Shown here: positions 26,147-56,598 of the stretch, piece by piece
How the letters are laid out: each line of letters opens with the position of its first letter
Position numbering within the stretch: the first letter of the stretch is position 1
Sequence record: OQ708376.1
DNA length: 64,000 bases
Strand: one strand, 5' to 3'
Made by a program: the position numbers and the translations under genes
The notes under the pieces: model-generated
Told to the model about the DNA's origin: nothing
The model's input: the letters and a program-made list of their open reading frames with translations, nothing else
The model's database searches: none

Positions 26147-26698
26147 ATGATAGACCAAATTAAAATCCTTACAAAGCAAATCACTGATTTTCTTTCTGAT
26201 AAAGATGGATTTAATACAGAAGTAAAAATGCACGGTGTTAGTGTTGATGTAATTGCACCAAATGGTAATGTAACAAGTTACGACATGTATGAATTACTTC
26301 TTTATACTCTAGCAGTACGTAAACTAGGTAGTGATATTGAACTCAATATCAATACTGATGAAAGTGGGAATAAAATTTTTGCAATCAACACCAGTGCTAA
26401 ATTCGATATCAGTACTGAAATTAAAAAAATAAATGAAAGTTTTATTGGCTTTAAGCATGAATCAATTCAAAGTGTTTTTATTGGAAAGCAAACTTCTAAT
26501 AGTGAATGCCCATATTGTGTAATGACTTTATATAAAGATGGAAACTGGATGCGTCAAGATTTAGTATTTGCTGAACTTCTGTATGCATTTACACATGAAC
26601 TTAAAATCGAATTGGACGATAGTGTTTATTGCTTTAAGAAAATTCGAAATATAACTAAAGATATACAAACCCAACTTAAAGAATTAAATGATAAATAA
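26147..26698 (+). CDS. hypothetical protein
   Basis: TAAGGA RBS. Confidence 0.75.
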   Translation: MIDQIKILTKQITDFLSDKDGFNTEVKMHGVSVDVIAPNGNVTSYDMYELLLYTLAVRKLGSDIELNINTDESGNKIFAINTSAKFDISTEIKKINESFIGFKHESIQSVFIGKQTSNSECPYCVMTLYKDGNWMRQDLVFAELLYAFTHELKIELDDSVYCFKKIRNITKDIQTQLKELNDK

Positions 26699-26702
26699 AT
26701 AT

Positions 26703-26837
26703 ACCAGAAATGGTTAACATATCATGTTACTTTCCTCCCTTACATAATAATGATGCGTTATTATATTTTCATTTTGTTCTTATTCCCCTTTTGGTACAAA
26801 ATCATTTTAGTACTGCCCCGATCTTCGGGGCATTTTT
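26703..26837 (+). ncRNA. candidate small RNA with C-rich anti-SD-like segments
   Basis: ATAAATA at 26691; hairpins flank TTCCTCCCTT and TTCCCCTTTT; ends in terminator TGCCCCG-ATCTT-CGGGGCA-TTTTT. Confidence 0.4.
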
Positions 26838-26858
26838 CTTATCTAAAATTGAGGATAT

Positions 26859-27254
26859 ATGAAGAACAATATTGGAACTTCAATAATTAAACCACTTTCT
26901 TATTACCTTGAAAAATTTAGAAGCACAAATGGTAATAAATTTAATAATATATTTCAGTTCTCTCATAAAGAATATATTACAATTGATCATTTTTCAAAGA
27001 AACTAATGTATGTAAATGATAATAGTCATATTATTAAATTATCATTCGATATTGAGTTAGATAAATTAACATTTACGGAATACATTAATCAAAAAACTTC
27101 TTTTTTATGTCAATACAATAGGAAAGTATATAGTAATATTTCTATGTATCTAAATGATGAATATCACTTTCAACAATCTACAATAGAAGAAGTATTGTTC
27201 AGTACTGAAGAATTAAAAGAACTATATTACTGGTATAATTATTTCACATCTTGA
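26859..27254 (+). CDS. EExxFQ-family protein
   Basis: NDEYHFQQSTIEE. Confidence 0.75.
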   Translation: MKNNIGTSIIKPLSYYLEKFRSTNGNKFNNIFQFSHKEYITIDHFSKKLMYVNDNSHIIKLSFDIELDKLTFTEYINQKTSFLCQYNRKVYSNISMYLNDEYHFQQSTIEEVLFSTEELKELYYWYNYFTS

Positions 27255-27279
27255 CATTATTGTGGGTTTATCCTACAAT
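27251..27279 (+). promoter_or_regulatory. sigma70 promoter
   Basis: TTGACA-17-TACAAT. Confidence 0.8.
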
Positions 27280-27309
27280 ACATGATGATGCTGCATTGAG
27301 GATAAATTT

Positions 27310-27720
27310 ATGAGTTTAGATTTACACAATGAACTAAAATATTTTTTAGATTTGGACATATCAGAATTGAACCACCACGTCAATCATATGACTAGTACTG
27401 TATGGTGGTCTAATGATCAAGACGACCCAATTATCCAACTAAGTGATGAATCGTCAATTATGCGATTTTATAAGATTAATTATAAAAAGAACATCAAGAT
27501 CACATATGTACCATACAAAAACATACTACTAGTCGAAACACTTAATCCAAGTTCTTTATTAAAAATCACCGATTTAGATACATTACAAACAAGTGAATCT
27601 TTATTCCAACGTTCATTAGTTGATGATCTTGGTGGTATTACTTTTGAAGATATATTACAATTGAAGAATATGTATAGTGAATTGTTGGAGATTAAAAACA
27701 CTTTAGTAATGGGGAATTGA
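27310..27720 (+). CDS. EExxFQ-family protein
   Basis: TSESLFQRSLVDDLGGITFEDI. Confidence 0.75.
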   Translation: MSLDLHNELKYFLDLDISELNHHVNHMTSTVWWSNDQDDPIIQLSDESSIMRFYKINYKKNIKITYVPYKNILLVETLNPSSLLKITDLDTLQTSESLFQRSLVDDLGGITFEDILQLKNMYSELLEIKNTLVMGN

Positions 27721-27721
27721 T

Positions 27722-28126
27722 ATGGTAAGTTTACTAGATATTGATAATACCAGTTTAGTGCTGGTGAAAAAAGGTTTAATTCCAAATTCTAAAAAAATTG
27801 ATTATGCTGTTATTGAAACAAATATTGGAAATATCTGGTACGACTCTGAAAGGGATATTGTGTTTAGCTGTGTAGACAGTGATCGTTCTGAATGTTGTAG
27901 AGTCGGTCATGACGGACAATTTGTTTTTGAATTTCGTTATTGGAAGGACGCAAAATTTCACCAAGAACTGGTTGCTTTGTCAAATGAACTATATACAGAA
28001 GAATCGTTCTTCATGGCTAGTACTATTAATGATTTTGGTTCAGTTACATTTGAGTACTATAAAAAAATATACGCACTATCCAGAGAAGTTATGAAAATTA
28101 TCAGAACTGCTGAAGGTAAAGAATAA
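27722..28126 (+). CDS. EExxFQ-family protein
   Basis: TEESFFMASTINDFGSVTFE. Confidence 0.75.
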   Translation: MVSLLDIDNTSLVLVKKGLIPNSKKIDYAVIETNIGNIWYDSERDIVFSCVDSDRSECCRVGHDGQFVFEFRYWKDAKFHQELVALSNELYTEESFFMASTINDFGSVTFEYYKKIYALSREVMKIIRTAEGKE

Positions 28127-28127
28127 C

Positions 28128-28505
28128 ATGACTACTATATATGATATTTTGGGTGTTCTGAGTAGAAATATAGATGATGATTTTGTTATTGTTCAAGATA
28201 CTAGAAATACATTTCAACTACCAATAGGTTCACCAGATAGGTTAATTTTTAATAGATACTCAAATGAACTAACTTACATCCATGATGGGATTGCAATTGT
28301 ATCAGTTTCTATAAACGACTATACAATACGATATGTATATGACTTCAACGATTATTGTACAAGAATCCACAGTATTGATATTTCCGAAGAGGAACTATTC
28401 CAATTGTCATTGATTGAGAAAAATGTAATAGGAATTACAGAAATTGGTATTATTAAAAAAGCATTAAACTATACAAATATAAGAATTAATGGTGGGTGCA
28501 GATGA
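28128..28505 (+). CDS. EExxFQ-family protein
   Basis: SEEELFQLSLIE. Confidence 0.75.
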   Translation: MTTIYDILGVLSRNIDDDFVIVQDTRNTFQLPIGSPDRLIFNRYSNELTYIHDGIAIVSVSINDYTIRYVYDFNDYCTRIHSIDISEEELFQLSLIEKNVIGITEIGIIKKALNYTNIRINGGCR

Positions 28506-28957
28506 ATGTTGACGAAATAAAAAATCATTTTGAAATTGCAATGTCATGTGAATTTGACACACAACGTGTTCATGACCCGAAAGAACATATACGCATTTGT
28601 TGTGAATTGTCAGATGATTGTAATATTTTTATTGGAAAAACCTATGACATGATCGATCTTTCATGTATAGATCCATTGGAAAGAAAAACAAAATATTTAT
28701 ATCTGTACAACACAACATCAGATACGATTGCAATACAACTAATATCAACCACAACATCCCACAGTTATTATAACATAACTGAGGTTAGTAGTTTAACGTT
28801 AACCGAAGAAGGATTCTTTCAACAATCGCTTATTCGTGAAATTGGTGTTAGTTATGATGAGTTAAATGTATTAGTAGATTGTTTCGAAAAATTGAGTACT
28901 TTTGTATTATCCCTTTTTAATATACAGTCGCAAAATCCAATGGTGGTGAAATGCTAA
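28496..28957 (+). CDS. EExxFQ-family protein
   Basis: TEEGFFQQSLIREIGVSYDEL. Confidence 0.75.
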   Translation: MQMNVDEIKNHFEIAMSCEFDTQRVHDPKEHIRICCELSDDCNIFIGKTYDMIDLSCIDPLERKTKYLYLYNTTSDTIAIQLISTTTSHSYYNITEVSSLTLTEEGFFQQSLIREIGVSYDELNVLVDCFEKLSTFVLSLFNIQSQNPMVVKC

Positions 28958-29391
28958 ATCCAAGTAAATTTCTCCACTTACTTTCGATAACATCAATACC
29001 GGATCTTACCAGTGAAACTAATGAATATCGTGAAGCTGGGGTGGTGTCTATGGAACTCGATACATTTGACCACAAATGCTATGTGACATATGACCCACCG
29101 CGTTATGGTAAAGAACATTCTTCTTTTATTTTTGTATTCGTATACACTGTATATGATAATACAACACTTGATGATGTTTGTATTGACACTTACGAAATTT
29201 GTGATAATATCATAACTGATGACAACAATAACTCATTTGATATGTCACTATATAACACAGAAGAATCGTTGTTTCAACTTAGTACTGTTATTGATGCACC
29301 ATCATTAGAAGATATAAAACAATTTCAAGAACATCTTGACGCAGTTCGTGAGATGTTCTATAATCATTATCCAGAAGTAGAGTTCAATTAA
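28951..29391 (+). CDS. EExxFQ-family protein
   Basis: TEESLFQLSTVID. Confidence 0.75.
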   Translation: MLNPSKFLHLLSITSIPDLTSETNEYREAGVVSMELDTFDHKCYVTYDPPRYGKEHSSFIFVFVYTVYDNTTLDDVCIDTYEICDNIITDDNNNSFDMSLYNTEESLFQLSTVIDAPSLEDIKQFQEHLDAVREMFYNHYPEVEFN

Positions 29392-29405
29392 CTAAAGGTA
29401 ATAAG

Positions 29406-29666
29406 ATGACTAAAGTAGTTCGTAAACGCCACATGATGAACATGGATGAATTTCGTACATTTGACAAATATCGTACTATGTTTCGTATGCTTTCACAGGG
29501 CCGTCCAATCGTCATTGTAACAGAGAATTACATGTCACCTGAGATTATGTTTGGTAATTATGAAAAGGTCTTCATGTTGTACGTGAAGCGTGGATTACTT
29601 ACAATCAAGACATTAGCTGAAGCAACTGATGAAGATATGGATGGTGATAATACCTTTACCATGTGA
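29406..29666 (+). CDS. hypothetical protein
   Basis: AAGGT RBS. Confidence 0.7.
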   Translation: MTKVVRKRHMMNMDEFRTFDKYRTMFRMLSQGRPIVIVTENYMSPEIMFGNYEKVFMLYVKRGLLTIKTLAEATDEDMDGDNTFTM

Positions 29667-29674
29667 GGAAATAT

Positions 29675-29752
29675 ATGTCTGAAAAGCCAAAAGAACCATT
29701 AGATCGTGATGATGATTTTTATGACGAACGATATGGAGATGATGATGAGTGA
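29675..29752 (+). CDS. acidic micro-ORF (25 aa)
   Basis: GAGGA RBS; MSEKPKEPLDRDDDFYDERYGDDDE; stop overlaps the next gene. Confidence 0.45.
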   Translation: MSEKPKEPLDRDDDFYDERYGDDDE

Positions 29753-29996
29753 ACATAGTGCTGTGCTTAAAAAGATTTTAAAGGAACTTGATGGTGAGTT
29801 TAATGTCACAGAAGAAGAATATCAGCATTGGAAGAAAGGTTTTGAACAACTAACCGAGTATGATAAAGTGTTCAATATGATTGGTGTAATTAGCCAGTAC
29901 TTACTTGGTGGAGGACGTGCAAGTGCTTCAATTCTGGCATCTGCAATCATCTGTACATCACGATGGTGTGATGAAAAAAGTTTGGAAGATTTCTAA
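29745..29996 (+). CDS. hypothetical protein
   Basis: GGAG at 29735 then ATG. Confidence 0.65.
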   Translation: MSEHSAVLKKILKELDGEFNVTEEEYQHWKKGFEQLTEYDKVFNMIGVISQYLLGGGRASASILASAIICTSRWCDEKSLEDF

Positions 29997-30048
29997 ATAA
30001 GATGCTATAATATATTATAGTACCTTAACAATATAAAAAGGATTTTAT

Positions 30049-30909
30049 ATGAAACCTATCCGAGTACTTTCTCTTTTTAATGGAATGAGTGTGGGATATA
30101 TGGCATTGCAAGATGCTGGTATCCCAGTTGAAAAATATTATTCATCCGAAATTGACAAGTACGCAATAGCTGAATCTCAAGCTAACTTTCCTGATATTAT
30201 CCAATTGGGTGATGTAACTAAGTGGAGAGAATGGGATATTGAGTGGGATAAAATAGATTTATTAATGGGTGGTTTCCCATGTCAAGCCTGGTCAGTTGCA
30301 GGTAAACAGGGTGGTTTAAATGATATACGTGGGCAGTTATTTTTAGTAATGGTTGAAATTTTTGATCATATCAAAAGTCTCAATCCTAACTTGAAATTTC
30401 TGTTTGAAAATGTTAAAATGAAGGAAGATTTCAAAGAATACATTAATAGTATTTTAGGAATCACGCCAGTACTGATAAACTCCCAGCATTATACGCCTCA
30501 CTTCAGGCAGAGATATTACTGGTACAGTACTGATAAGCTTTTTATACCACCTGCATTATCCAATGCACCTAAACTTCAAGATATTATTGAAGATGGTTGG
30601 TACACTGACAGAACCGCTTCGTACTGTATAGATGCTAACTATTTTAAAGGTGGTGATTGTAACCAGTACTTTAATAAATCCAGACGACAATTGGTGTTTC
30701 GTGACCCAGTGATCAGTCGTCAATATCTATTAGAGAATGGCAAAAGAAATATTGACTATAGACACTTAAGTGTAGTAGAATGTTGTAAATTACAGGGTGT
30801 TCCTGAAGATTTCTTTAAAGTGTCTAGTAAGACACAAGCATACAAAATGCTTGGGAATGGATGGACTATGCCAGTTATATCACATTTACTAAGAGAGATA
30901 TTCTTTTGA
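30049..30909 (+). CDS. DNA (cytosine-5)-methyltransferase
   Basis: VLSLFNG (I), GGFPCQ (IV), FENV (VI), RQRYYW (VIII), KMLGNGW (X). Confidence 0.93.
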   Translation: MKPIRVLSLFNGMSVGYMALQDAGIPVEKYYSSEIDKYAIAESQANFPDIIQLGDVTKWREWDIEWDKIDLLMGGFPCQAWSVAGKQGGLNDIRGQLFLVMVEIFDHIKSLNPNLKFLFENVKMKEDFKEYINSILGITPVLINSQHYTPHFRQRYYWYSTDKLFIPPALSNAPKLQDIIEDGWYTDRTASYCIDANYFKGGDCNQYFNKSRRQLVFRDPVISRQYLLENGKRNIDYRHLSVVECCKLQGVPEDFFKVSSKTQAYKMLGNGWTMPVISHLLREIFF

Positions 30910-31391: not shown

Positions 31392-31433
31392 TTACAAATC
31401 CACGCATTGCGTGGATTTTTCATAGGTGCATAT

Positions 31434-33224: not shown

Positions 33225-33226
33225 CT

Positions 33227-33370: not shown

Positions 33371-33387
33371 CAAAAAGGGGACTAAAA

Positions 33388-39507: not shown

Positions 39508-39682
39508 GACATTTGATGAGTGGTTTAATCTACACTATAATATAAATGCAGCAGATATATACTATTTTAAGCTTGAATTGTATATATCATTGCGTAACCC
39601 AATTGAGTACTATAACAACATTATCAATTGTGATGATTTTGGTACATATTTTAGTATAGCCGTTATGGATATTAAGAGATGA
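39497..39682 (+). CDS. small hypothetical protein (distant MTHEEW-like)
   Basis: MQPKTFDEWF. Confidence 0.55.
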   Translation: MQPKTFDEWFNLHYNINAADIYYFKLELYISLRNPIEYYNNIINCDDFGTYFSIAVMDIKR

Positions 39683-39858
39683 CACATGAAGAATGGATGG
39701 CAATGATGAAAAAACGTTATGACCAGTTTGGAAATGGATTTATTGATGGTCATTTCGATATTTTACGAGACAAATATAAGTTCGAATCATATGTACTAGA
39801 TGAGAATGGAAATCGTTGGTTCATCTATGAGCTTGCGGTTAGAGACAAAAAAATATAA
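39679..39858 (+). CDS. MTHEEW-family small protein
   Basis: MTHEEWMAMMKKRYDQFGNG...WFIYELAVRDKKI. Confidence 0.7.
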   Translation: MTHEEWMAMMKKRYDQFGNGFIDGHFDILRDKYKFESYVLDENGNRWFIYELAVRDKKI

Positions 39859-39869
39859 TAACCTTTTCC

Positions 39870-39935
39870 ATTGTCCATTGCAATGCTTTCTTTACAGAAG
39901 AATAAATGAAACACTTAATTGAACTGGATACATAA
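39870..39935 (+). pseudogene. remnant of a duplicated 3' end of gene 40239-40454
   Basis: TGCTTTCTTTACAGAAGAATAAATGAAACACTTAATTGAACTGGATACATAA versus TGCTTTCTTTACAAAAGAAGAGATGCAGCACTTAATTGTACTGGATACATAA; GAG changed to TAA. Confidence 0.7.
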
Positions 39936-39936
39936 A

Positions 39937-40113
39937 ATGACACACAAAGAATGGATAGAGTCACTAAAATATAAACATGATCATTTTGGATTTGGTATAC
40001 GCCAAGGCCATTATGATGTTTTGAACGATAAAAAAACGTTCGAATCATTGGTTTTGGACGAAGATTCCAACCACTGGTTCATCTACGAGCTTGCTATTAG
40101 AGATAAAAAATAG
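39937..40113 (+). CDS. MTHEEW-family small protein
   Basis: MTHKEWI...FGFGIRQGHYDVL...WFIYELAIRDKK. Confidence 0.7.
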   Translation: MTHKEWIESLKYKHDHFGFGIRQGHYDVLNDKKTFESLVLDEDSNHWFIYELAIRDKK

Positions 40114-40118
40114 TAAGA

Positions 40119-40454
<336 letters not shown>

Positions 40455-40455
40455 A

Positions 40456-40638
40456 ATGACACACGAAGAATGGATGTCCAAACAGCATAAAGAACATGAC
40501 TGCTTTGGGAATGGCATTCGTCAGGTACATTATGATATATTAAGAGATGAAAATCTTTTCAGGTCATATGTTTTGGATACCAGAAAACCCTGGTTTATAT
40601 GCGAACTGGCATTTAGAAAGTCAAATAATCAAAACTAA
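40456..40638 (+). CDS. MTHEEW-family small protein
   Basis: MTHEEWM...FGNGIRQVHYDIL...WFICELAFR. Confidence 0.7.
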   Translation: MTHEEWMSKQHKEHDCFGNGIRQVHYDILRDENLFRSYVLDTRKPWFICELAFRKSNNQN

Positions 40639-40654
40639 ACAAGGAATACAAAAA

Positions 40655-40873
40655 ATGGAAACAACTTTATTAGAAGTTATTCAATCATTAAAACCTGAAG
40701 ATGAGGTTCAAGTACTACTACATGGTTATCGTGTAAAAGGTACTGTGGTTTTAGTCAATGATACAACATTGGTTATTACAGAAACAAACCCATATGATAG
40801 TAATCAACTTGCCAATATCCATATCGATATCACTGGAATTATTGGTGTCGGTGTATCTAAAACACTTGCATAA
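40655..40873 (+). CDS. small protein, possible Sm/Hfq-like fold
   Basis: AAGGA RBS; helix then VQVLLHGYRVKGTVVLVNDTTLVI...IHIDITGIIGV. Confidence 0.6.
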   Translation: METTLLEVIQSLKPEDEVQVLLHGYRVKGTVVLVNDTTLVITETNPYDSNQLANIHIDITGIIGVGVSKTLA

Positions 40874-40906
40874 ATCATTAATTCATTATATAATGGGACA
40901 TAACAT

Positions 40907-41022
<116 letters not shown>

Positions 41023-41026
41023 AATA

Positions 41027-41103
41027 CGGGGTATAGCACAATTGGATAGTGCAAGAGAATTCTAATCTCTAGGTTGGGGGTTCAAGTCCCTCTACCTCGG
41101 CCA
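41027..41103 (+). tRNA. tRNA-Arg(UCU)
   Basis: CGGGGTA/TACCTCG, AGAGA-ATTCTAA-TCTCT, CCA; A32 is atypical. Confidence 0.88.
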
Positions 41104-41126
41104 ATTTTAATTAAAGGTTAAAAACC

Positions 41127-41453
<327 letters not shown>

Positions 41454-41461
41454 AAAAAAAG

Positions 41462-42066
<605 letters not shown>

Positions 42067-42069
42067 TAC

Positions 42070-42229
<160 letters not shown>

Positions 42230-42244
42230 CAATGCGAGGTATAA

Positions 42245-42502
<258 letters not shown>

Positions 42503-42510
42503 GAATTTAA

Positions 42511-42912
42511 ATGAAAAAGAATGACTTGATCAAAATGCTTCAAGAAATTGACGGCAATCCAGAGATTGTTATTTGGAATGGATACGTCGATGATTATATG
42601 AACATCGAAAAAGGCTTGACTAAAATCACTCTAGTCAAAGAAACCGAACAGTTTCTTCAGGGTGCATTAGAGCACGAATGGTGTGAACGTAACAATACAT
42701 TCGACATTCCAGAAGACCAACGAACCAAGATTGCAGAACGTGCTAAAGAACTGCATAAGAAACGCGAATACGATTTCCAGAACCCATATGTCACTGAAGA
42801 CGAATTCAATCGCTGGTACGGTAAAAAGAAATTGACAAAGTATGTCCTTTCACCTAAACTACGTGGTAAGACTTCACTTGGTGTATTCAACGCCGCAGAC
42901 TTAAACTACTAG
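42511..42912 (+). CDS. hypothetical protein
   Basis: AGGA RBS. Confidence 0.75.
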   Translation: MKKNDLIKMLQEIDGNPEIVIWNGYVDDYMNIEKGLTKITLVKETEQFLQGALEHEWCERNNTFDIPEDQRTKIAERAKELHKKREYDFQNPYVTEDEFNRWYGKKKLTKYVLSPKLRGKTSLGVFNAADLNY

Positions 42913-42921
42913 CGGGTATTA

Positions 42922-43471
<550 letters not shown>

Positions 43472-43531
43472 TACAACCGACAATGACGAAAGAACAGTTA
43501 TCAACATTTATCAACGCAGCATTAGATAAAA

Positions 43532-43563
<32 letters not shown>

Positions 43564-43615
43564 TACCAAGCAGCTTGAAGAACTTTGTAGTGCTGCACCT
43601 ATGCCGACTCTTGGC

Positions 43616-43725
<110 letters not shown>

Positions 43726-43728
43726 TCT

Positions 43729-43818
<90 letters not shown>

Positions 43819-43824
43819 TACACT

Positions 43825-44250
43825 ATGACATACAACATTGTTAAAATGGTGAACTATGTATTAAAAAACAACGCATGGTCACTGCATGATGTACAATTAG
43901 AAGATATTGGTGAAGTTAGAGTATTTTGCTATGATCCAGATTTGAATCAAACCACAGATTTGAGTAAATGTTTTAATATTTTTCTTGGTTATGAATTCAA
44001 TAATCATTTTTATTCATTTGATGTGTATTTTGAAAAAGTTATATTCAGAAGTTATGAATGTGATAATGAAGATTATGATTATGATGATGAATCAATTGAA
44101 TTGAATGTTAACGATATTGATACTGAAGAAAAATTCTTCCAGTACTGCCTCCTTAACGACACATTAGGATTAACATTTGAGGACATTAAAGCTATACTTA
44201 AAGTTCAAAAGTTGATTCCAGAAGAGGTACTAAATCCATTAAATGACTAG
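43825..44250 (+). CDS. EExxFQ-family protein
   Basis: TEEKFFQYCLLNDTLGLTFEDI. Confidence 0.75.
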   Translation: MTYNIVKMVNYVLKNNAWSLHDVQLEDIGEVRVFCYDPDLNQTTDLSKCFNIFLGYEFNNHFYSFDVYFEKVIFRSYECDNEDYDYDDESIELNVNDIDTEEKFFQYCLLNDTLGLTFEDIKAILKVQKLIPEEVLNPLND

Positions 44251-44608
44251 TCTAATAGTACGTATAATGCAAGATGTTTGTAATAACCTTTATACAGGCA
44301 ATTTTGACGATCCGAACATAAAAATATTATGTTATGATGGTTTTACAATGGTACATCCATCCTATTCAAATAATATCTACGTAGCATATACAGGTGAAAA
44401 TCTATTGTATCAATTTGATATATATAGTACAATGACAAAGATAATTTTGGATGCCTCTAAACCAGCAATCTTTATTGCTTCTCATGATTACCATTACACT
44501 GAAGAATCACTATTTCAGTACTCAATGATTAATGACATTGGTGGGTTGACATTGGATGAGGTTAATGCTATACTAGCTGTCTCACGTTTGGTTAAAACCC
44601 ACAATTAG
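44243..44608 (+). CDS. EExxFQ-family protein
   Basis: TEESLFQYSMINDIGGLTLDEV. Confidence 0.75.
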   Translation: MTSLIVRIMQDVCNNLYTGNFDDPNIKILCYDGFTMVHPSYSNNIYVAYTGENLLYQFDIYSTMTKIILDASKPAIFIASHDYHYTEESLFQYSMINDIGGLTLDEVNAILAVSRLVKTHN

Positions 44609-44617
44609 GAGATTCAT

Positions 44618-44809
44618 ATGTTCTGGAATTTATTATGCTTGTTTGGTCGTACATTGGTTCTTGCTATTATTCATACACCTGGTATTCGTAATTATGTTTC
44701 TTATGAATTTAAGAAAAATTATCACAACAATACTGAAGTTCGTACAACTAAGATGTGCAAAGACTTCAAGGTAGATGTTCCACCATTCAAGAAGTACGAG
44801 GATGAATAA
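44618..44809 (+). CDS. small hypothetical protein
   Basis: AGGAG RBS. Confidence 0.65.
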   Translation: MFWNLLCLFGRTLVLAIIHTPGIRNYVSYEFKKNYHNNTEVRTTKMCKDFKVDVPPFKKYEDE

Positions 44810-45093
44810 TGGAATTCATTGTTGCACCTGATGAACTTAAAACATTCACGTTCAGAGATAATAACAATTATCCTTATACAAATCATTCATTGAATTCATT
44901 ACATGTTATTGCAATCATTGCATCTGAATACAGGGATAATCCATGTATTGATTTTAAAACCACTGATGGCGAATATACATGGGTGATCCCAAAAGATAAA
45001 TATAGTTATCAAGGGGCAGTAGAAATTCGTGACTCGATTCTAAAACAAATCGAAGATGGAAATACTCATCCTAAACTAAACACTCAGTACTGA
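44809..45093 (+). CDS. hypothetical protein
   Basis: TAATG coupling. Confidence 0.7.
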   Translation: MEFIVAPDELKTFTFRDNNNYPYTNHSLNSLHVIAIIASEYRDNPCIDFKTTDGEYTWVIPKDKYSYQGAVEIRDSILKQIEDGNTHPKLNTQY

Positions 45094-45106
45094 AATCGTT
45101 TAACCC

Positions 45107-45240
45107 GATAGCTTCTAGTCAGTACTGATTCCTCCTTATGTATAGAAGCTATCACTTTTTTACGTATAATGATATTACCCTCAAATTCATTATATTCGTT
45201 ACCCTCTAACAGTATCTTTTTATTCCTCTTGGATGCTGTA
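45107..45240. ncRNA. candidate sRNA: hairpins with CCTC-containing loops
   Basis: GATAGCTTCTA/TAGAAGCTATC encloses TTCCTCCTTA; ACAGTATC/GATGCTGT encloses TTCCTCTT; TACCCTC twice between them. Confidence 0.4.
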
Positions 45241-45249
45241 ATTTAGAAG

Positions 45250-45309
45250 TTGACTTTTTAACTTCTACTGTGTTATACTTAAGGCTGATTCGATGAATCG
45301 GCCTTTTTT
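45250..45309 (+). promoter_or_regulatory. weak promoter overlapped by terminator
   Basis: TTGACT-18-TATACT; AAGGCTGATTC-GAT-GAATCGGCCTT-TTTT. Confidence 0.55.
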
Positions 45310-45318
45310 CTTATATAG

Positions 45319-45747
45319 GTGAATGCAATGAGTTATTTGTTTACTTTAATTGATAAGTATGTTGACATTGTATACCGTCAAGTTTGTAGTGATACGTTTG
45401 AAACAAAAAACCCAATTAGAGATGGCATTTTTGATGTTGTCGTTGGATCATTTTTGAATGGATACACCGAGACATTATACAACAGTAATAATATTTTTAT
45501 TTCAGTTCAATCCAGACATACATCAGACTATGCTGTTAGCATTGATATTTGGGAAAATAATATAGAAATAGATATAACGGAACATACTAACATTCATGTT
45601 GATGATACATTTAATCAATTAACTGAAGAAATGTACTTGCAGTTGAATTTTGTACATAATCTTACAAATATCAGTTATGATACATTAAGGAAAATATGTT
45701 TTCTTAGTGGGGTGATCCGTAGTAATATGAGTAAGGATGGGAAGTGA
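45319..45747 (+). CDS. EExxFQ-family protein
   Basis: TEEMYLQLNFVHNL. Confidence 0.7.
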   Translation: MNAMSYLFTLIDKYVDIVYRQVCSDTFETKNPIRDGIFDVVVGSFLNGYTETLYNSNNIFISVQSRHTSDYAVSIDIWENNIEIDITEHTNIHVDDTFNQLTEEMYLQLNFVHNLTNISYDTLRKICFLSGVIRSNMSKDGK

Positions 45748-46165
45748 AATGTTAAAAATTCCACCTAAGTCGTTAACACATCTTATTGAATGTGGTGTAA
45801 TATTTTCCGAAGGTGATACCTCATCATACACATTGGTCGATGAGCCTTATAATTTTTCATACCAATCTTATAAAAATAATTCTAAAATTTCTTGTAGATA
45901 TGCTGAAAACATATTAATAGATGTTTCGTTACATAATGTTCCGAAATTTTACATTGATATCTTTGGTGATTCTTTGACAATTCGAACATATGATTATTTT
46001 ATTAATAAAGACCTCTTGAGTCTTCCAATTGAACATGATACTATAGATTCAGAGATGTTCTTTCAACTATCAACAGTTTACGATTTACAGGGTTTAACTG
46101 TTGAGCAGTTGAATGGAATATTTGAGATTTCACGAAACATACGAAGCAGGAATAAAAATGTCTAA
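45737..46165 (+). CDS. EExxFQ-family protein
   Basis: DSEMFFQLSTVYDLQGLTVEQL. Confidence 0.75.
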   Translation: MGSEMLKIPPKSLTHLIECGVIFSEGDTSSYTLVDEPYNFSYQSYKNNSKISCRYAENILIDVSLHNVPKFYIDIFGDSLTIRTYDYFINKDLLSLPIEHDTIDSEMFFQLSTVYDLQGLTVEQLNGIFEISRNIRSRNKNV

Positions 46166-49137: not shown

Positions 49138-50292
49138 TTATGCGTTGTAACCAACTATTACGACTGAGCAGTCAAGCGGTTCTACTACTTTAAGAATTAC
49201 ATTATCATCTTCATCCACTTGTATTTCACTATGAACTACATGATTGTCTGAAGAATATAATTGAACTTGTGGTAGTGCTTTACCATGTTCAGTTACTGGA
49301 ACTGAGATAGAGTACATAGAGTCTTCACCGAGAACCCACTCACTTAAAGTATATTCTTTATGGAAAGGAGTAGTATGCAGTGTTTTTCCGATTATACTCA
49401 AAGAAACAGGTAAATTATCAGTTTGATACACAGTAATATTACCTTCTGCGTCTACAGAAAGATCTACACCAACTTGATATAAGTCACCACTGTATGCTTG
49501 AAGTGCTAAGTACTGTCCACGATCATGAACATCAAATGGAACAACCGCAGAAAATACACCTTCCGAAACAGGTTCAAATTGGGATAGAAGAACTGATGTA
49601 ACAAAATCAATATCCTCACCACTTTCAAGAACATCAAATTCCACCACTTTAGTGTTATAATATGGAGAAGTGAGCGTAGCAGTACCTTTCCCTGATTGTG
49701 TGATAACATCAACTGGAATTGTAAATGCATCATTAACAAATTGGGTAGTAAAGTATTCTGTCCCGTCTGGTAATACGATTGTTATTACCATACCGTTAGT
49801 ATCAATTTCTGAACCAGTGTTGAATAATTTACCACTAATTGAGTCATTACCAACAAATACTGGTGAAATGAGAATATTATCTATATCACGATCTATAATA
49901 CCACATTCAGGTGTATACATATGATACAAGGTTTGTGAACTACCTAAAATTGTTTTATGTAGCATAAATTTATATACAAATCCAGTATCAGTTTCTTGTG
50001 GCTCTTCAGAATATCCACGAACAAAGAAACAATTTTTATTAATTTCACTTAATAGTTGGTCATTAGTTTTATTGTAATTTAATAGATAACCTTTATTATC
50101 TTTAGTTGTTATTTGTACTTTACGATATATTATATTAGTTCTTGGATCAACTAAATCATATAATCTATGGCTTCTTTGGCGATAGATTCTAATATTTTTT
50201 AGTCTAGTTCCATCGTTGAGGATTGCACCATCAACAACATAACCACATTCACCAAACTTATAGCGTCCAGCCGCAGCAATTGACCTTGACAT
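49138..50292 (-). CDS. putative virion/tail-fibre-associated protein (Ig-like domain plus two C-terminal repeats)
   Basis: GGAGGGA RBS and ATAAATA late motif (50324-50330) on -; repeats S.VP..H...Q.YS...VD..(G/D)N. Confidence 0.75.
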   Translation of the reverse strand: MSRSIAAAGRYKFGECGYVVDGAILNDGTRLKNIRIYRQRSHRLYDLVDPRTNIIYRKVQITTKDNKGYLLNYNKTNDQLLSEINKNCFFVRGYSEEPQETDTGFVYKFMLHKTILGSSQTLYHMYTPECGIIDRDIDNILISPVFVGNDSISGKLFNTGSEIDTNGMVITIVLPDGTEYFTTQFVNDAFTIPVDVITQSGKGTATLTSPYYNTKVVEFDVLESGEDIDFVTSVLLSQFEPVSEGVFSAVVPFDVHDRGQYLALQAYSGDLYQVGVDLSVDAEGNITVYQTDNLPVSLSIIGKTLHTTPFHKEYTLSEWVLGEDSMYSISVPVTEHGKALPQVQLYSSDNHVVHSEIQVDEDDNVILKVVEPLDCSVVIVGYNA

Positions 50293-50352
50293 TTATCCCT
50301 CCATTGGTATAATTATTATAACGTATTTATTATGCATATCCAAAAAATGAGC

Positions 50353-50381: not shown

Positions 50382-50408
50382 GTAGTGAATGAATAATGAG
50401 GTGTTTTT

Positions 50409-50993: not shown

Positions 50994-51217
50994 TTACTGC
51001 AACTGTATATCAAGATATCAATGAAGAATTTCATTCTAAAATTGCGTTCTTATCATTTCCTGTACTCCCAGCAGTTGGGTCAACGTTGAATCTTACCATT
51101 TGTGGTTTTGAGAAATATTATAAAGTACTAGATATTGAGTACTGTGCTGATGTATATTCATGTAATAGTGAAATTGCAATTCCAGTATCAATCGATATTA
51201 TTGTAAAAGAGGTTTGA
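50990..51217 (+). CDS. hypothetical protein
   Basis: GTGA coupling with GGAG. Confidence 0.65.
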   Translation: MITATVYQDINEEFHSKIAFLSFPVLPAVGSTLNLTICGFEKYYKVLDIEYCADVYSCNSEIAIPVSIDIIVKEV

Positions 51218-51675: not shown

Positions 51676-52151
51676 TGTTAACAATAGTGTTGTTGGTTAG
51701 TCCATTTGTGTATTTTGTGCTGTATAATATTTTTAGTAATGCTAATCATTTTAAATATGCACAAACAATTGCAAAGCATGAAGGTTTTTGGAATTTTTTC
51801 CCAGCATTACTATGCTCATATCTATACCATGAACGCTATTTCATTTTTCCTGAATATAAAAATTATGGTTATGATTCTAAAGTAAATGGTATAATTGAGT
51901 ACTGTATAAGAAATTATATTAATAATAATGATAACGTCCAAGTAAGAATAGGAAATGGTAATATATCAAGAATAGTTTTCATACCTGATATACAAGACCC
52001 AATATACTTATATCCATATGATTATAGTATTAGTGTAGGTTGTTCGATACATGGTAGTAAATCTATGTACGATTATTTTATCTTACCACCAACACAAATT
52101 AGATTAATAGAAAAATATTTGAGGGAAAAGTTTGACAACAAAGATTCTTAG
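51675..52151 (+). CDS. membrane-anchored hypothetical protein
   Basis: N-terminal TM; TGATG coupling. Confidence 0.65.
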   Translation: MLTIVLLVSPFVYFVLYNIFSNANHFKYAQTIAKHEGFWNFFPALLCSYLYHERYFIFPEYKNYGYDSKVNGIIEYCIRNYINNNDNVQVRIGNGNISRIVFIPDIQDPIYLYPYDYSISVGCSIHGSKSMYDYFILPPTQIRLIEKYLREKFDNKDS

Positions 52152-52160
52152 TATTATAAT
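52132..52160 (+). promoter_or_regulatory. sigma70 promoter
   Basis: TTGACA-17-TATAAT. Confidence 0.8.
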
Positions 52161-52192
52161 TAACACACCAAGTAACCCAAGGGGGATGGAAA

Positions 52193-52651
52193 ATGGATGT
52201 ATTAGCTACAAATTTCAAACGTAACACAGAAGAGCGTGAAGGTTATTTGAGTATTAGTGAAGTTGTCGATGACAATTTTAAACAATACATTTTTAATAGT
52301 GCAATTAAATTAAAATGCACAAAAGATTCACCTGATCGTAGCTTTACTAAATGGATTGCGTATTGGGAAGATTCACCAGTTGCAATTGAAATGACTGTGA
52401 TTACAACAGTACTTGAAACAGGTTACATCAAAGCCATTATAGTTGATAAGAAAGTCCGTACTCTTGATGAAATTAATCCATATCCAGCCCGAAATTCTAA
52501 AGTTTTTGGTGTGTTGGTTGATGGTAAATTTATGATAGAAAAAGATGCAAAGGAATATGTAATTAATAAACTTCAAACTACATCAGAAAAAAAGGAAGTA
52601 GTGGACCAAAACTCTGTTGATGCAATCAAAAAAGCATGGGGACTAAAGTAA
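52193..52651 (+). CDS. hypothetical protein
   Basis: AAGGGGG RBS. Confidence 0.75.
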   Translation: MDVLATNFKRNTEEREGYLSISEVVDDNFKQYIFNSAIKLKCTKDSPDRSFTKWIAYWEDSPVAIEMTVITTVLETGYIKAIIVDKKVRTLDEINPYPARNSKVFGVLVDGKFMIEKDAKEYVINKLQTTSEKKEVVDQNSVDAIKKAWGLK

Positions 52652-52652
52652 T

Positions 52653-53075
52653 ATGTTCACACTAAGTAATGCAAAATATCTTTTTCTTATTAGTATTATT
52701 GGTTGGGTTATGGCTCCAGTGCTAAATGCACTGGGGTTTTCCGATGAACATAAACTTTTAAATGTTTCAGGTTTAATTCAGGGTATTTCATGGTATACAT
52801 TAATTATATTTTCAGTGTGCATCAATACATTTGCCCGTGATTATCGACGTTTGTTATATCTGAAAGTATTTGGAACTACACGATATAGTTTTGTTTACAC
52901 TTTCATTTTAGTACCGTGTATGTTATATGCATTTGTATTTGATTACTATACATATCTATGGGTATGTGGAACTATGTTTGTTATGTTGGAATACATCAGA
53001 ACTGTTCAAAACTCATATGCCGATGAGTTTCATGATCTAGAAGTTAAACGAAAATTAACGGAGCTAAACAAATGA
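52653..53075 (+). CDS. multi-pass membrane protein
   Basis: about 4 hydrophobic segments. Confidence 0.75.
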   Translation: MFTLSNAKYLFLISIIGWVMAPVLNALGFSDEHKLLNVSGLIQGISWYTLIIFSVCINTFARDYRRLLYLKVFGTTRYSFVYTFILVPCMLYAFVFDYYTYLWVCGTMFVMLEYIRTVQNSYADEFHDLEVKRKLTELNK

Positions 53076-53497
53076 GAGGCTATAATAAGATTTGTATTTT
53101 TGTATTTTTAGTTTGTGCATTCAATTCGTTTGGTTACTACTGTACAGAAAATAATATTTCATATGGTTTAAATCCTTTGTGGTTTACAATTTCCAATGTA
53201 GCACAAATTGGTATTGCTCTTATGTCTGCACTTATGTTCTGTCCAATTGTCACTATGGATACTGATCATGAAAGGCTTGGATTTCTCCGTGATACTGGAG
53301 ACGAACCTTACAGTAGATTGATTGTGTTGTATCCATTTATTGTTATTTTAGGTACTAACATCCAACTTGGGTCATTATCTAATAGTGTTACATCAGCAGC
53401 TATTGCTATATTTGCATTCACATTTTTTATGGTACACAAATCAGTACTTAATTGGTATATCACAAAAATGGCAGAAGAAGGTACTAAAAATACTTGA
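53072..53497 (+). CDS. multi-pass membrane protein
   Basis: about 4 hydrophobic segments. Confidence 0.75.
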   Translation: MRGYNKICIFVFLVCAFNSFGYYCTENNISYGLNPLWFTISNVAQIGIALMSALMFCPIVTMDTDHERLGFLRDTGDEPYSRLIVLYPFIVILGTNIQLGSLSNSVTSAAIAIFAFTFFMVHKSVLNWYITKMAEEGTKNT

Positions 53498-53522
53498 CAT
53501 AATTTAGTATGTTATATATAAT
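53494..53522 (+). promoter_or_regulatory. sigma70 promoter
   Basis: TTGACA-17-TATAAT. Confidence 0.8.
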
Positions 53523-53556
53523 TATTTTGTTAAAAACAAATTAGAGTAAGGAACTT

Positions 53557-53808
53557 ATGAACATCGATAAGGTCAAAGAACTTAGTGCTGCACTAATTAA
53601 GAATGAAGAAGTTTGTGAAGAACTTCGCAGTACTATCAAAGTTGAGTACGCACGACTCCAAGGTATGCTTCAAGAATCAGAATGGGTAGTAACTAAATCT
53701 ATCGAAGCAATCTATAAGGATATCGAATCCCTTTTCAACAAGAAAAGTAAGATTGAATCTGATTCATATAACAAACGTAAAGAGTTATCTACTGCACTTG
53801 GTATCTAA
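53557..53808 (+). CDS. hypothetical coiled-coil protein
   Basis: TAAGGA RBS. Confidence 0.75.
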   Translation: MNIDKVKELSAALIKNEEVCEELRSTIKVEYARLQGMLQESEWVVTKSIEAIYKDIESLFNKKSKIESDSYNKRKELSTALGI

Positions 53809-53814
53809 AAGTAT

Positions 53815-53850
53815 TTGACATAACAAATAATATGGAGTACAATGTGCTCC
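53815..53850 (+). promoter_or_regulatory. sigma70 promoter with hairpin across the -10
   Basis: TTGACA-17-TACAAT; GGAGTAC-AAT-GTGCTCC. Confidence 0.75.
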
Positions 53851-53882
53851 TAATTTAATTATCAGCTAAAAAGGAAAACATT

Positions 53883-54143
53883 ATGAAATCTATTCTCGTT
53901 GCAGTTAACCTGGTTGCTTCCCCATCTTTCAACTTCAAACAAGTTGTTGCTGATAATCTGAAGAAGATCTGTCCAAACGCTGAATTGACTTTCTGTGTAT
54001 TTGATTCAGAAAAAGTAACTAAAGTTGATCTAAACTATCTTTTGAACGAAGTACAAAGCGTTTCTGGTGAAAGTAACTTAAAAGTTCTTCATGAGATTGC
54101 AGAAGATTATGATGACACTCTAGTAATTTCGGAGAAATTCTAA
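53883..54143 (+). CDS. hypothetical protein
   Basis: AAGGA RBS. Confidence 0.75.
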   Translation: MKSILVAVNLVASPSFNFKQVVADNLKKICPNAELTFCVFDSEKVTKVDLNYLLNEVQSVSGESNLKVLHEIAEDYDDTLVISEKF

Positions 54144-54148
54144 ATCAA

Positions 54149-54568
54149 ATGATTACATTCATTCAGTACTTAATCATTAAATTTTTTGGCTATTATACGA
54201 TTGAGGGCAAAGCTACGCTTGCACATAAAATCTTTGTAGCATTATGTACGGGTGATTATGACGTATTGAATAAGTACTGTAAATCTAAAGAATGTATTGA
54301 TATAATGGCACTTCGTATCTATGAGTGCCGATCCAATAGATACAATTTTTACCAGTACAGATTTGATAAAGAAGAATTTGATAGCATCAAAATGCTAAAG
54401 AATTTATGTAACAATAAAAAGAATATGCATATATCAGAATTTGTTGCTTTGTATTTTTATTTAAAAAGTTCATTGTATATGAACACGATGCAAAGATTCG
54501 ATACTAGAATTAATGTATTCACCGATAAAGAATTTTATATATACGATAAATTCTTAGATAAGGTTTAA
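54149..54568 (+). CDS. hypothetical protein
   Basis: GGAG RBS. Confidence 0.7.
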   Translation: MITFIQYLIIKFFGYYTIEGKATLAHKIFVALCTGDYDVLNKYCKSKECIDIMALRIYECRSNRYNFYQYRFDKEEFDSIKMLKNLCNNKKNMHISEFVALYFYLKSSLYMNTMQRFDTRINVFTDKEFYIYDKFLDKV

Positions 54569-54569
54569 T

Positions 54570-55067
54570 ATGACAACTGTTTATATTGATAAACGATTAA
54601 ATTTATTGATTACCGATTCTAGAGTTACGTCAACTATACCACGAAACTTATTTGGTTTTTTCCCACTAAGACCAAAATATCAATATGGAGTTGTTAATCA
54701 AAAAACTTTATATGTACATGACCGTTTATTCAGTGCTAGTGGGTCAGTAAGTGAAATTGATAAAGTACTGGATTGGTTAATTAATAAAGTACCAGTTATA
54801 CCTGACAGAAAGTTAAGTTGCCATTGTGTGCTTCTTTCTAAAGATTATGTTATTCATATGATTTTAACTAAAGGAAAGTTTATTAAAAAACTTGAATATC
54901 TACATGAAGACTACACTTTCTTTATGGGAAGTGGTGGAGAATACATGGTAGATGCTGCTATTCATGAAGAACATACAACTTTATATGATAAAGTGTTTAG
55001 TACTTTCATGGATGTGCATAACCATGATTGCTTCACAGATGATAATATTAATGTATATCGATTTTGA
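54570..55067 (+). CDS. HslV/proteasome-beta-like Ntn peptidase
   Basis: N-terminal (M)TT, ITDSRVT, SASGS, FMGSGG. Confidence 0.65.
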   Translation: MTTVYIDKRLNLLITDSRVTSTIPRNLFGFFPLRPKYQYGVVNQKTLYVHDRLFSASGSVSEIDKVLDWLINKVPVIPDRKLSCHCVLLSKDYVIHMILTKGKFIKKLEYLHEDYTFFMGSGGEYMVDAAIHEEHTTLYDKVFSTFMDVHNHDCFTDDNINVYRF

Positions 55068-55088
55068 TTTCGTCATTAGGAGATGTAA

Positions 55089-56054
55089 GTGAAAAAGCTT
55101 GATTTAAATACAATTGCCGAAGAAGTTCTGGATGAATGTTTTTCTAATGAAGAAGTCAACACACTAGAAGCCTTAGATTTCGTTGAAGATAAAGATGAAA
55201 ATGAAGGTAAAGTACAAAGCAGTTTCAAATATAATATTACACTTAAGCGACCACCAAATGTTTCCAATGAAGATCTAATTCGTGATATTCAAGCTGGTAT
55301 CAATGTAAAGAAAAACACTGAACTGTTAGTTCGTTACAATTATGGACTTATTATTGATGTAGCAAGTAAATGTACTTGTTATATCCCATTTGAAGATAAG
55401 ATTTCATATGGTGTTGAGGGGTTCATGAGAGCACTAAAAACCTTTGATCTTAATAAGAATGTGAAGTTCATTACCTATGCTTCTTCTAGTATTTACATGA
55501 CAGTTTATAACGAAAGTTCTGACGCTAACTATATGGTACACTTCCCACGTTATATGAGTGTTCATAAGATCAAAGTAAAAAGATTCTGTCAGGAATATAT
55601 GCGTAAACATGGTGTTCGCCCAACTCCTGAAATAATCTCAGAGGGTACTGGGATTGAGATTCAGCATGTTAATAACTGTTTGTTATTTCAAAGCGAATAC
55701 ACTTCTCTGGATGCACCATTAGACGGTGTTACCGATGGTACACTAGGTGACATTATTCATTCACCTGCTTCTGATTTTAACCTCAATGTTGATAGTATTC
55801 GTGCACCTTTACGTTATGCTATCAATGAACTGACTAACGAATTGAGTACTAAAGAACGTGAGATTATCCAGCGTGTTCATGGTCTAGGTGAATATGAACC
55901 TGAAACGCTTCGTGAGATTGCTGATAATGGTTTTGTTGATGATAATGGAAAATATGTTAAATCCCGTTCATCAATACACCGAAAGTACAGTGAAGCTATG
56001 CAAAAGCTTAAGAAGTTAGTACTTGCAAAAGGGTACGAATACGAAGATTTCTAA
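55089..56054 (+). CDS. RNA polymerase sigma70-family factor (regions 2-4)
   Basis: LLVRYNYGLI..VA, FEDKISYGVEGF.RA.KTFD...KFITYA, RPTPEII, SLDAPL, LSTKEREII..HGL...TLREIA; GTG start after AGGAG. Confidence 0.9.
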   Translation: MKKLDLNTIAEEVLDECFSNEEVNTLEALDFVEDKDENEGKVQSSFKYNITLKRPPNVSNEDLIRDIQAGINVKKNTELLVRYNYGLIIDVASKCTCYIPFEDKISYGVEGFMRALKTFDLNKNVKFITYASSSIYMTVYNESSDANYMVHFPRYMSVHKIKVKRFCQEYMRKHGVRPTPEIISEGTGIEIQHVNNCLLFQSEYTSLDAPLDGVTDGTLGDIIHSPASDFNLNVDSIRAPLRYAINELTNELSTKEREIIQRVHGLGEYEPETLREIADNGFVDDNGKYVKSRSSIHRKYSEAMQKLKKLVLAKGYEYEDF

Positions 56055-56060
56055 AGAACA

Positions 56061-56088
56061 AGGGTTGGCTTATGCCAACCTTTTTTTT
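56061..56088 (+). terminator. intrinsic terminator after the sigma gene
   Basis: AGGGTTGGC-TTAT-GCCAACCTT-TTTTTT. Confidence 0.85.
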
Positions 56089-56124
56089 ATGGGATGAAGT
56101 AAAAGTTTGTGATATAATTATCTT

Positions 56125-56598
56125 GTACAATTCTGTTGGCATGATATTCATGTACCTGATCCACTCGAAAACGTAGAGGGCAGTTGAGCAGTCCGACAGT
56201 GCGAACAGCAAAAGAAACCCGTTAGATGTGGGCATAGTTTGAACCCCTCACGGCAATGCGGCTGTATAAAGAACCACGTTAGGATAGCTGGTGGTTCCTT
56301 GATAGACATATAAGGATAACACCTTACGAATTATCTAAGGGAGAGTTATCGAATTTTGTACAGGAAAGTTGCGTCCAAAATTTGAGTACTCACATTAAGT
56401 ATTTGATTGCATAGATACTTAATGAAGATACACTATGTTTAAAAGTGTAGACCGTCATATGAAACTGAAGTAGAGAGAAACAGGATGACCCGCTTTCGCA
56501 CTCGTTATGAGTAATCTTCAATGCAATAGCTCTGATACCATCAGCGTCAAATTTCCCTCCTTGTGGGGGGAAGAAAAATCCCTTCCTCAAATCCCGTC
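56125..56598 (+). ncRNA. candidate large structured ncRNA (~470 nt)
   Basis: extended -10 TGATATAAT (56110-56118); no + ORF of 60 aa or more; more than 10 complementary helices including a 5'-to-internal long-range stem. Confidence 0.65.

Follow-up and report, generated by a model that had tools for sequence, protein, structure and literature searches.

CCUCC motifs in the early region of an Escherichia jumbo phage probably belong to four unrelated non-coding elements, one of them a covariation-supported large RNA family

Introduction

The regulatory RNAs RsaE of Staphylococcus aureus, RoxS of Bacillus subtilis and RNAIII have their own promoters, carry at least two UCCC/CCCC loops and form Rfam families, and in the 3' untranslated region (3'UTR) of the S. 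aureus icaR mRNA a UCCCCUG tract pairs with the Shine-Dalgarno (SD) sequence in the 5'UTR of the same message. Here we analyzed a 64,000-nucleotide (nt) stretch (the window, whose positions are used throughout) of Escherichia phage vB_EcoM_CRJP21 (OQ708376.1, bases 248001–312000), an Asteriusvirus of the PBECO4/121Q/G17 group of Rak2-like jumbo phages with a genome of ~366 kb and E. coli as its host. An earlier note had seen C-rich motifs in the + strand non-coding DNA of this window and had speculatively read the four elements carrying them as one SD-pairing system. All five motifs were found, namely TTCCTCCCTT at 26732–26741 (site 1), TCCCCTCC at 43680–43687 (site 2), TTCCTCCTTA at 45129–45138 (site 3), and TTCCCTCCTT at 56553–56562 and TCCCTTCCTC at 56579–56588 (site 4); the coordinates given for four of them were right, and TTCCCTCCTT had been placed at 56533, off by 20. 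The single system was not borne out. We conclude that the motifs are probably spread over four non-coding elements on the + strand of the early region, which are unrelated to one another and do not make up one translation-control system. Of all the results, the large RNA at site 4 is the best supported and the most interesting.

Sites 1 and 3 resemble RsaE, RoxS and RNAIII in that an unpaired C-rich tract complementary to GGAGG-type SDs is located between hairpins and is followed by an intrinsic terminator. They differ from these RNAs in that the host is Gram-negative, in that neither site is driven by its own promoter and in that Rfam gave no match. As in icaR, the anti-SD-like tract is found in a 3'UTR soon after the stop codon; unlike in icaR, there is no extended complementarity to the element's own mRNA, and the pairing seen by eye between site 1 and the mRNA of gene 26147–26698 (~6 base pairs, AGGAAA/UUUCCU) is no more than any SD would give.

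The site 4 RNA is comparable to GOLLD and ROOL in its length of several hundred nt, its heavy covariation and its presence in phages. In PA5oct, a relative of this clade, a 451-nt long non-coding RNA (lncRNA) makes up ~5% of the phage reads (PMC7318152). PA5oct ncRNA002 was considered as a homolog of the site 4 RNA and rejected, since nhmmer gave no match between them. Unlike GOLLD, ROOL and the PA5oct lncRNAs, the site 4 RNA is present in multiple copies per genome, is also carried by chromosomal islands and has no Rfam match. It further resembles ColE1 RNA II and the T4 oriF and oriG transcripts in being promoter-driven, untranslated, several hundred nt long, devoid of a regular terminator and G-rich near its 3' end, and its copies are dispersed as the T4 origins are. 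We know of no T4 origin transcript described as a conserved structured RNA, whereas the site 4 RNA is conserved and structured.

Results

A large structured RNA family at site 4

Site 4 is located in a 651-nt gap free of coding sequences (CDSs) that follows a sigma-70-like gene (55089–56054). The promoter, the homologs and the covariation together outline a large structured RNA on the + strand (56110–56612), ~480 nt in length, that probably starts near 56125 and has its conserved core at ~56150–56605. An extended −10 element, TGnTATAAT (56110–56118), is conserved upstream of the core and is preceded by a TGAAAC element in the phages CBB, GAP32, Yen9 and XbC2. A TGAAAC-type, divergent RpoD-like promoter has been tied to DNA-synthesis genes by the authors of the CBB study (PMC5259590). 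The core has ~70% nucleotide identity in jumbo phages of Erwinia, Serratia, Pectobacterium, Cronobacter, Yersinia, Salmonella, Klebsiella and Xanthomonas, and at every phage locus that we fetched it occupies a 600–700-nt gap in which the records show either no gene or short, unconserved open reading frames (ORFs).

The RNA is also repeated within genomes. BLAST placed the core at three to five positions per genome (four in CRJP21), and an IMG/VR scan with an invariant 19-base pattern returned two to three dispersed copies per genome, such as those at ~25, 93 and 335 kb in fHe-Yen9-04 and at ~90 and 193 kb in 121Q. Several copies were present in each of the Rak2-like jumbo phages examined; the window itself has no second one.

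Structure prediction by RNAalifold on 11 sequences gave 88 base pairs, half of which (44/88) showed compensatory double changes. We then used 27 distinct copies, paralogs included, in a MAFFT alignment that was not fitted to any structure: 59 pairs were 98.5% canonical and 35 of them were compensatory, whereas controls in which the partner was shifted by 1–3 columns yielded 4–13 compensatory pairs and 39–45% canonical ones. The supported helices include 56271–56276/56292–56297 (6/6 pairs) and the long-range helix 56406–56412/56521–56527 (6/7 pairs). The Rfam 15 covariance models, run over the whole window at the gathering threshold, found tRNAs only, and at E values up to 5 nothing credible was returned in 39600–45400 or in 55900–56800, where the site 4 RNA thus had no match; site 1 was covered in this comparison by the whole-window scan alone. 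Our literature search found no paper describing the site 4 RNA, and no record examined annotates an RNA at its position. The covariation therefore indicates that the site 4 RNA is a genuine structured RNA family, undescribed and outside Rfam 15.

The two C-rich motifs take on a different meaning within this RNA. The first one, UUCCCUCC (56553–56560), forms a hairpin with a conserved G-run (56565–56572), the C-run being the 5' arm and the G-run the 3' arm, and among the copies the 5' arm reads CCCUCC, UUCCCC, UCUCCC, CCUCC or GCCCCC. The C-run is thus kept because the stem requires C opposite G, and not as CCUCC. The second motif (56579–56588) is GCCUCAACAAAUCUCGUCAG in the orthologs and GCAUC, ACAUU or GGAUC in the paralogs. 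Neither motif behaves like an anti-SD mimic. The C-run/G-run hairpin closes the 3' end of a promoter-driven RNA of ~480 nt. In several copies, some of them paralogs (L006, L022, L032, L033, L036 and L207), an intrinsic terminator was observed between a GACGA/UCGUC hairpin and the C-run/G-run hairpin. Since this terminator comes ahead of the hairpin, the hairpin and its tail may form a separate 3' module, and in those copies this conserved module may lie outside the main transcript.

As for the neighboring genes, the one directly upstream (55089–56054) encodes a sigma-70 family protein with regions 2, 3 and 4, and the one downstream (57144–57932, 262 amino acids (aa)) an HNH endonuclease (PHROG match, E 8e-187). 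The latter was considered as a conserved protein partner of the RNA and rejected: it is unrelated to the downstream gene of CBB (~265 aa) and is not kept beside the RNA in other genera.

Copies of the site 4 RNA in bacterial chromosomes

Full-length homologs were also present outside phage genomes. In Serratia fonticola GTA-SR07 (NZ_CP183218.1; L042:3675–4171; nhmmer E ~1e-82), the copy is located in an island of 30–38% GC beside host DNA of 58% GC (rof, tilS), and its neighbors are two ParB/RepB-like genes and a large serine recombinase. Among 5426 complete E. coli genomes, two carried a copy; the one in LR-29-1 (NZ_AP027515.1; L207:11974–12555; E 1e-100) is full-length and occupies a 1.4-kb CDS-free gap in an integrase-bearing island of ~10 kb that adjoins ffs. 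A plasmid scan found no copy of the RNA. The chromosomal islands may be jumbo-phage-related satellites or defence islands.

An origin or primer transcript would be compatible with the scattering of promoter-driven copies over the genome, with a terminator missing from most of them, with the G-run and with the occurrence in integrative islands. We considered whether the RNA might prime replication, or form an R-loop, at an origin of the phage, in the way of ColE1 RNA II or the T4 oriF/oriG transcripts. The C-run/G-run hairpin and the conserved tail would then mark the RNA-DNA transition, and the islands would hold a copy so as to be replicated by an infecting jumbo phage. In line with this, the G-run is on the RNA-like strand, the −35 element in CBB, GAP32, Yen9 and XbC2 belongs to the class associated with DNA-synthesis genes (PMC5259590), and one of the island copies adjoins ParB/RepB-like genes. 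However, a complex covarying structure over ~400 nt is also typical of free functional RNAs, some paralogs have their intrinsic terminator before the G-run module, and neither an AT-rich unwinding element nor a mapped origin was identified. We regard the origin transcript as unlikely on balance. Equally, the site 4 RNA may be a free large non-coding RNA (ncRNA) that islands share with jumbo phages or use against them.

Conserved unpaired C-rich tracts in the 3'UTRs at sites 1 and 3

Sites 1–3 were aligned among CRJP21, G17, UE-S1, CMSTMSU, JNE01 and A4, with additional checks in ph0011 and EJP2. They are confined to Asteriusvirus, with a single copy of each per genome. IMG/VR pattern scans for further diversity of these sites returned almost solely chance matches, and a metagenome scan an identical copy only.

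Site 1 is the structured 3'UTR of gene 26147–26698 (26699–26838, + strand), as judged from alignment, folding and its terminator. Three hairpins (26703–26714, 26715–26729 and 26744–26764) are followed by a U-rich spacer and then by a strong intrinsic terminator (26814–26832) with a U tract. The unpaired segment CUUUCCUCCCUUAC (26730–26743) lies between conserved hairpins and includes the 11-nt motif UUUCCUCCCUU (26731–26741), 34 nt beyond the stop codon. This motif shows no change among the seven lineages in which the region is present (CRJP21, G17, UE-S1, CMSTMSU, JNE01, A4 and ph0011), and it is kept in A4 (~72% regional identity) and JNE01 (~82%) despite scrambled spacers. The first hairpin covaries, with an A-U pair replaced by G-C in A4, and the motif is unpaired both in the RNAalifold structure and in the minimum-free-energy fold (z −3.6).

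Site 3 is a terminator-like hairpin region (45084–45161, + strand), defined by alignment and folding, with stem arms at 45107–45117 and 45143–45153 and a U tract at 45156–45161. Its 25-nt loop contains the palindrome UCAGUACUGA (45119–45128) followed by the motif UUCCUCCUUA (45129–45138), 36 nt beyond a stop codon. A second UCAGUACUGA copy at 45084–45093 is able to pair with the loop copy, and both copies are invariant; the motif stays unpaired in both alternative folds, including the one in which the palindromes pair with each other. E. coli 16S rRNA ends in ...CACCUCCUUA-3', and UUCCUCCUUA at site 3 equals its last 8 nt. The motif is kept in five of the six relatives that have the element, UE-S1 reading UUUUCUCCUU, and the tract is retained in JNE01 at 72% regional identity. 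The substitutions in the site 3 stem yield G-U pairs on the + strand only.

Conservation in relatives, a test that the earlier note had set, divides the four elements. The motif is invariant at site 1 and partly conserved at site 3, and it is unpaired at both; at site 4, by contrast, it varies and is paired, and at site 2 it is conserved but partly paired. As to the strand, + strand promoters and terminators flank all four elements, and their orientation, together with the G-U pairs formed on the + strand only, points to RNAs of the + strand, as the earlier note had required. Its statement that no − strand ribosome-binding site and gene lie behind the motifs agreed with the sequence, the ORF list and the alignments. 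Coding on the − strand was rejected at site 1, where the sole ORF spans 3 codons and loses its frame in relatives, and at sites 2–4, where no credible start follows GGAGG.

Does the anatomy of sites 1 and 3 reflect SD pairing?

The two elements share a conserved unpaired UUCCUCC(C/U)UU, located 34–36 nt after a stop codon in a terminator-ended 3'UTR. They alone fit an anti-SD mimic, whose most likely mode would be a 3'UTR element, or a small RNA (sRNA) derived from it, that lowers translation or alters mRNA decay by pairing with purine-rich ribosome-binding sites. A link to the initiation factor IF3 of the phage is conceivable. The IF3 homolog that had been reported for the window is indeed encoded there (1501–2004, + strand, 167 aa), with Pfam matches that exceed the curated cut-offs for both IF3_N (E 5.8e-16) and IF3_C (E 8e-14). 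A possible Sm-fold protein, also reported, was not located: a pattern search for the Hfq-type Sm2 motif, a weak test, came back empty. The gene directly after IF3 (2018–2563) has a ClpS-like domain (E 2e-05).

The pointers to SD pairing are the anatomy of sites 1 and 3 only, and several observations weigh against it. First, we found no sigma-70-like promoter directly upstream of site 1 or site 3, so that a discrete sRNA would need processing. Second, each element has a single C-rich tract, compared with at least two in RsaE and RNAIII. Third, the SDs of the phage genes are short (AGGA, AAGGA, AAGG): GGAG, GAGG or AGGA is carried by 61 of 101 genes and GGAGG by one. Although strong GGAGG sites would be the preferred partners of a general SD binder, the phage, with SDs of the AGGA/AAGGA type, would not be spared. 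Fourth, a duplex scan of the window gave a single strong partner of the site 1 seed (45721–45750, −20.8 kcal/mol), and this duplex falls to −12.3 in UE-S1 and −4.7 in CMSTMSU. Since it collapses while the seed is unchanged, the duplex is probably due to chance; it was rejected as a phage target of site 1, and no conserved SD-pairing target of sites 1 and 3 was found within the window. Fifth, ph0011 has lost the whole hairpin of site 3 by deletion and no homolog exists in EJP2, so the element is dispensable in both. Lastly, the whole sequence depth for sites 1–3 stems from a single genus, and our literature searches turned up no Asteriusvirus transcript data. Taken together, SD pairing by sites 1 and 3 is a tentative proposal that we consider possible, if doubtful. 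The more ambitious version, in which the two tracts mimic the 16S 3' tail so as to titrate SDs, or else a nuclease or other factor directed against the anti-SD, and, together with IF3, bring about an RNA-based takeover of initiation in a Gram-negative host, appears highly unlikely.

Of much the same standing as SD pairing is the possibility that sites 1 and 3 work in cis, belonging to a terminator or attenuator structure, or that they function as DNA. The invariant TCAGTACTGA palindromes of site 3 could be operators for a protein or alternative pairing partners that switch the terminator, and the C-rich tract would be kept as a loop or linker or as a contact for Rho or another protein, and not for SD pairing. 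Both tracts are indeed found shortly after stop codons and shortly before terminators, the site 3 palindromes can form a 10-bp helix that competes or pseudoknots with the terminator stem, and TCAGTACTGA is strongly over-represented and fits exactly into the spacer of four sigma-70-type promoters. Acting in cis, however, leaves the invariant linker of site 1 unexplained, since site 1 has no palindrome, and makes the perfect match to the 16S tail in a 25-nt terminator loop an odd coincidence.

The palindrome deserves description in its own right. With up to one mismatch, TCAGTACTGA has 30 matches in the window where 2.2 are expected; CAGTACTG occurs 25 times (0.7–3.4 expected) and AGTACT 151 times (16–56 expected). 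Examples of TCAGTACTGA are at 41477, 41886, 41955, 43163, 45085, 45120 and 58452, and some are within genes. In the four sigma-70-type promoters, it fills the −35/−10 spacer exactly, in the manner of an operator. Downstream of site 3, 45250–45305 contains a good sigma-70 promoter (TTGACT, an 18-nt spacer, and TATACT with TG) and, a few bases after it and before the ribosome-binding site of gene 45328–45747, a strong terminator-like hairpin (45281–45305) with a U tract. This order of promoter, hairpin and ribosome-binding site is conserved genus-wide, and the hairpin could be an attenuator or a 5' stabilising hairpin.

Motif counts and chance occurrence

The region from 24001 to 64000 of the window equals bases 272001–312000 of the record without differences, and the identity of the window was established with a 3-kb piece (100% identity). 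Nearly all genes are oriented along the + strand, the sole − strand gene in the annotated part being 49138–50292. The region includes seven tRNA genes and is rich in consensus sigma-70 promoters and intrinsic terminators, as expected of an early region transcribed by the host polymerase.

We counted CCTCC in the 3430 nt of annotated intergenic DNA in 24001–64000 against a first-order Markov model, a comparison that the earlier note had suggested. In + strand intergenic DNA, CCTCC was observed 7 times against 0.85 expected and CCTC 14 times against 4.3; CCTCC was under-represented in coding DNA (2 against 4.1) and showed no excess over the whole window on both strands (20 against 28.6). Two further + strand matches are in tRNA genes (40990 and 42213). 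Three of the seven intergenic matches are plainly explained: the one at 26107 is an arm of a bidirectional terminator hairpin (26100–26128, with GGAGG at 26117 as the other arm), the one at 50298 is the SD GGAGG (50298–50302, − strand) of gene 49138–50292, 6 nt upstream of its ATG at 50292, and the one at 56556 is paired with the G-run of the site 4 hairpin. The intergenic excess therefore holds for the full count but becomes marginal once the explained matches are removed, with 3 loci against 0.85 expected (Poisson P ~0.055), which also tells against a functional reading of the tracts; conservation thus outweighs the motif count as an argument.

This count, and the fact that the homologs of sites 1–3 all come from one genus, would suit an explanation in which the motifs of sites 1–3 are chance C-rich tracts kept by the closeness of the relatives. 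Against this, the 11-nt block of site 1 is invariant in A4 and JNE01 amid scrambled spacers, and the site 3 tract survives in JNE01 at its reduced regional identity. We consider chance to be rather improbable.

A leader hairpin of tRNA-Thr at site 2

Site 2 is a hairpin with a 12-bp outer stem (43668–43725, + strand; alignment and folding), flanked by a 37-codon ORF (43544–43657) and tRNA-Thr (43735–43808), with the motif CCUCCCCUCC at 43678–43687. The first half of the motif, GACCUCCCCUC, is conserved and partly in the stem, and the second CCUCC reads CCUCA in three of six aligned relatives and also in EJP2. Within the whole motif, the stem takes up the first two C residues, UCCC stays unpaired and CUC forms pairs. 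EJP2 and ph0011 have the hairpin as well, always directly 5' of a tRNA. The motif belongs to a conserved 5'-leader hairpin of tRNA-Thr, which probably serves the processing or the stability of the tRNA precursor.

A second candidate ncRNA of the tRNA region was observed upstream, at 43141–43410, a CDS-free stretch of ~265 nt that is near-invariant across Asteriusvirus, ends in an intrinsic terminator and includes GGGGAGG at 43179–43185. In UE-S1 and A4 its UUCG hairpin carries compensatory changes, and such changes affect 3 of the 78 pairs predicted. The site 2 tract ACCUCCCCU (43677–43685) is perfectly complementary over 9 nt to AGGGGAGGU (43178–43186) in this candidate and both are conserved in the genus, although similar duplex scores are also found elsewhere in the window. 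Lying among phage tRNA genes, the hairpin and the candidate resemble the stable RNAs C and D of T4, and they are probably released by tRNA processing. We know of no sequence relationship to these T4 RNAs.

Discussion

The arrangement proposed at the outset, in which all four elements are trans-acting sRNAs whose CCUCC loops mimic the anti-SD and block host or early phage ribosome-binding sites in concert with phage IF3, has some observations in its favor: the motifs are there and are enriched in + strand intergenic DNA, those of sites 1 and 3 are conserved and unpaired, an IF3 homolog is encoded, and no − strand gene accounts for the motifs. On the other hand, the site 4 motif is paired and unconserved, the site 2 motif is partly paired in a tRNA leader, site 3 is missing from two members of the genus, sites 1 and 3 have no promoters of their own, no target within the window is conserved, and the SDs of the phage itself would be bound too. 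We judge this arrangement to be very improbable. The unifying interpretation fails. For sites 1 and 3, an anti-SD-like role is still a reasonable proposal, either as elements of the 3'UTR or as sRNAs derived from it.

If SD pairing by sites 1 and 3 were true, anti-SD mimicry encoded by an enterobacterial phage would be seen here for the first time, and the phage IF3 gene would gain a context. Because jumbo phages and chromosomal islands share the site 4 RNA, we suggest two readings: the RNA may be an element of replication or regulation, taken over by the islands from jumbo phages or turned against them, or it may represent a new class of large functional RNA.

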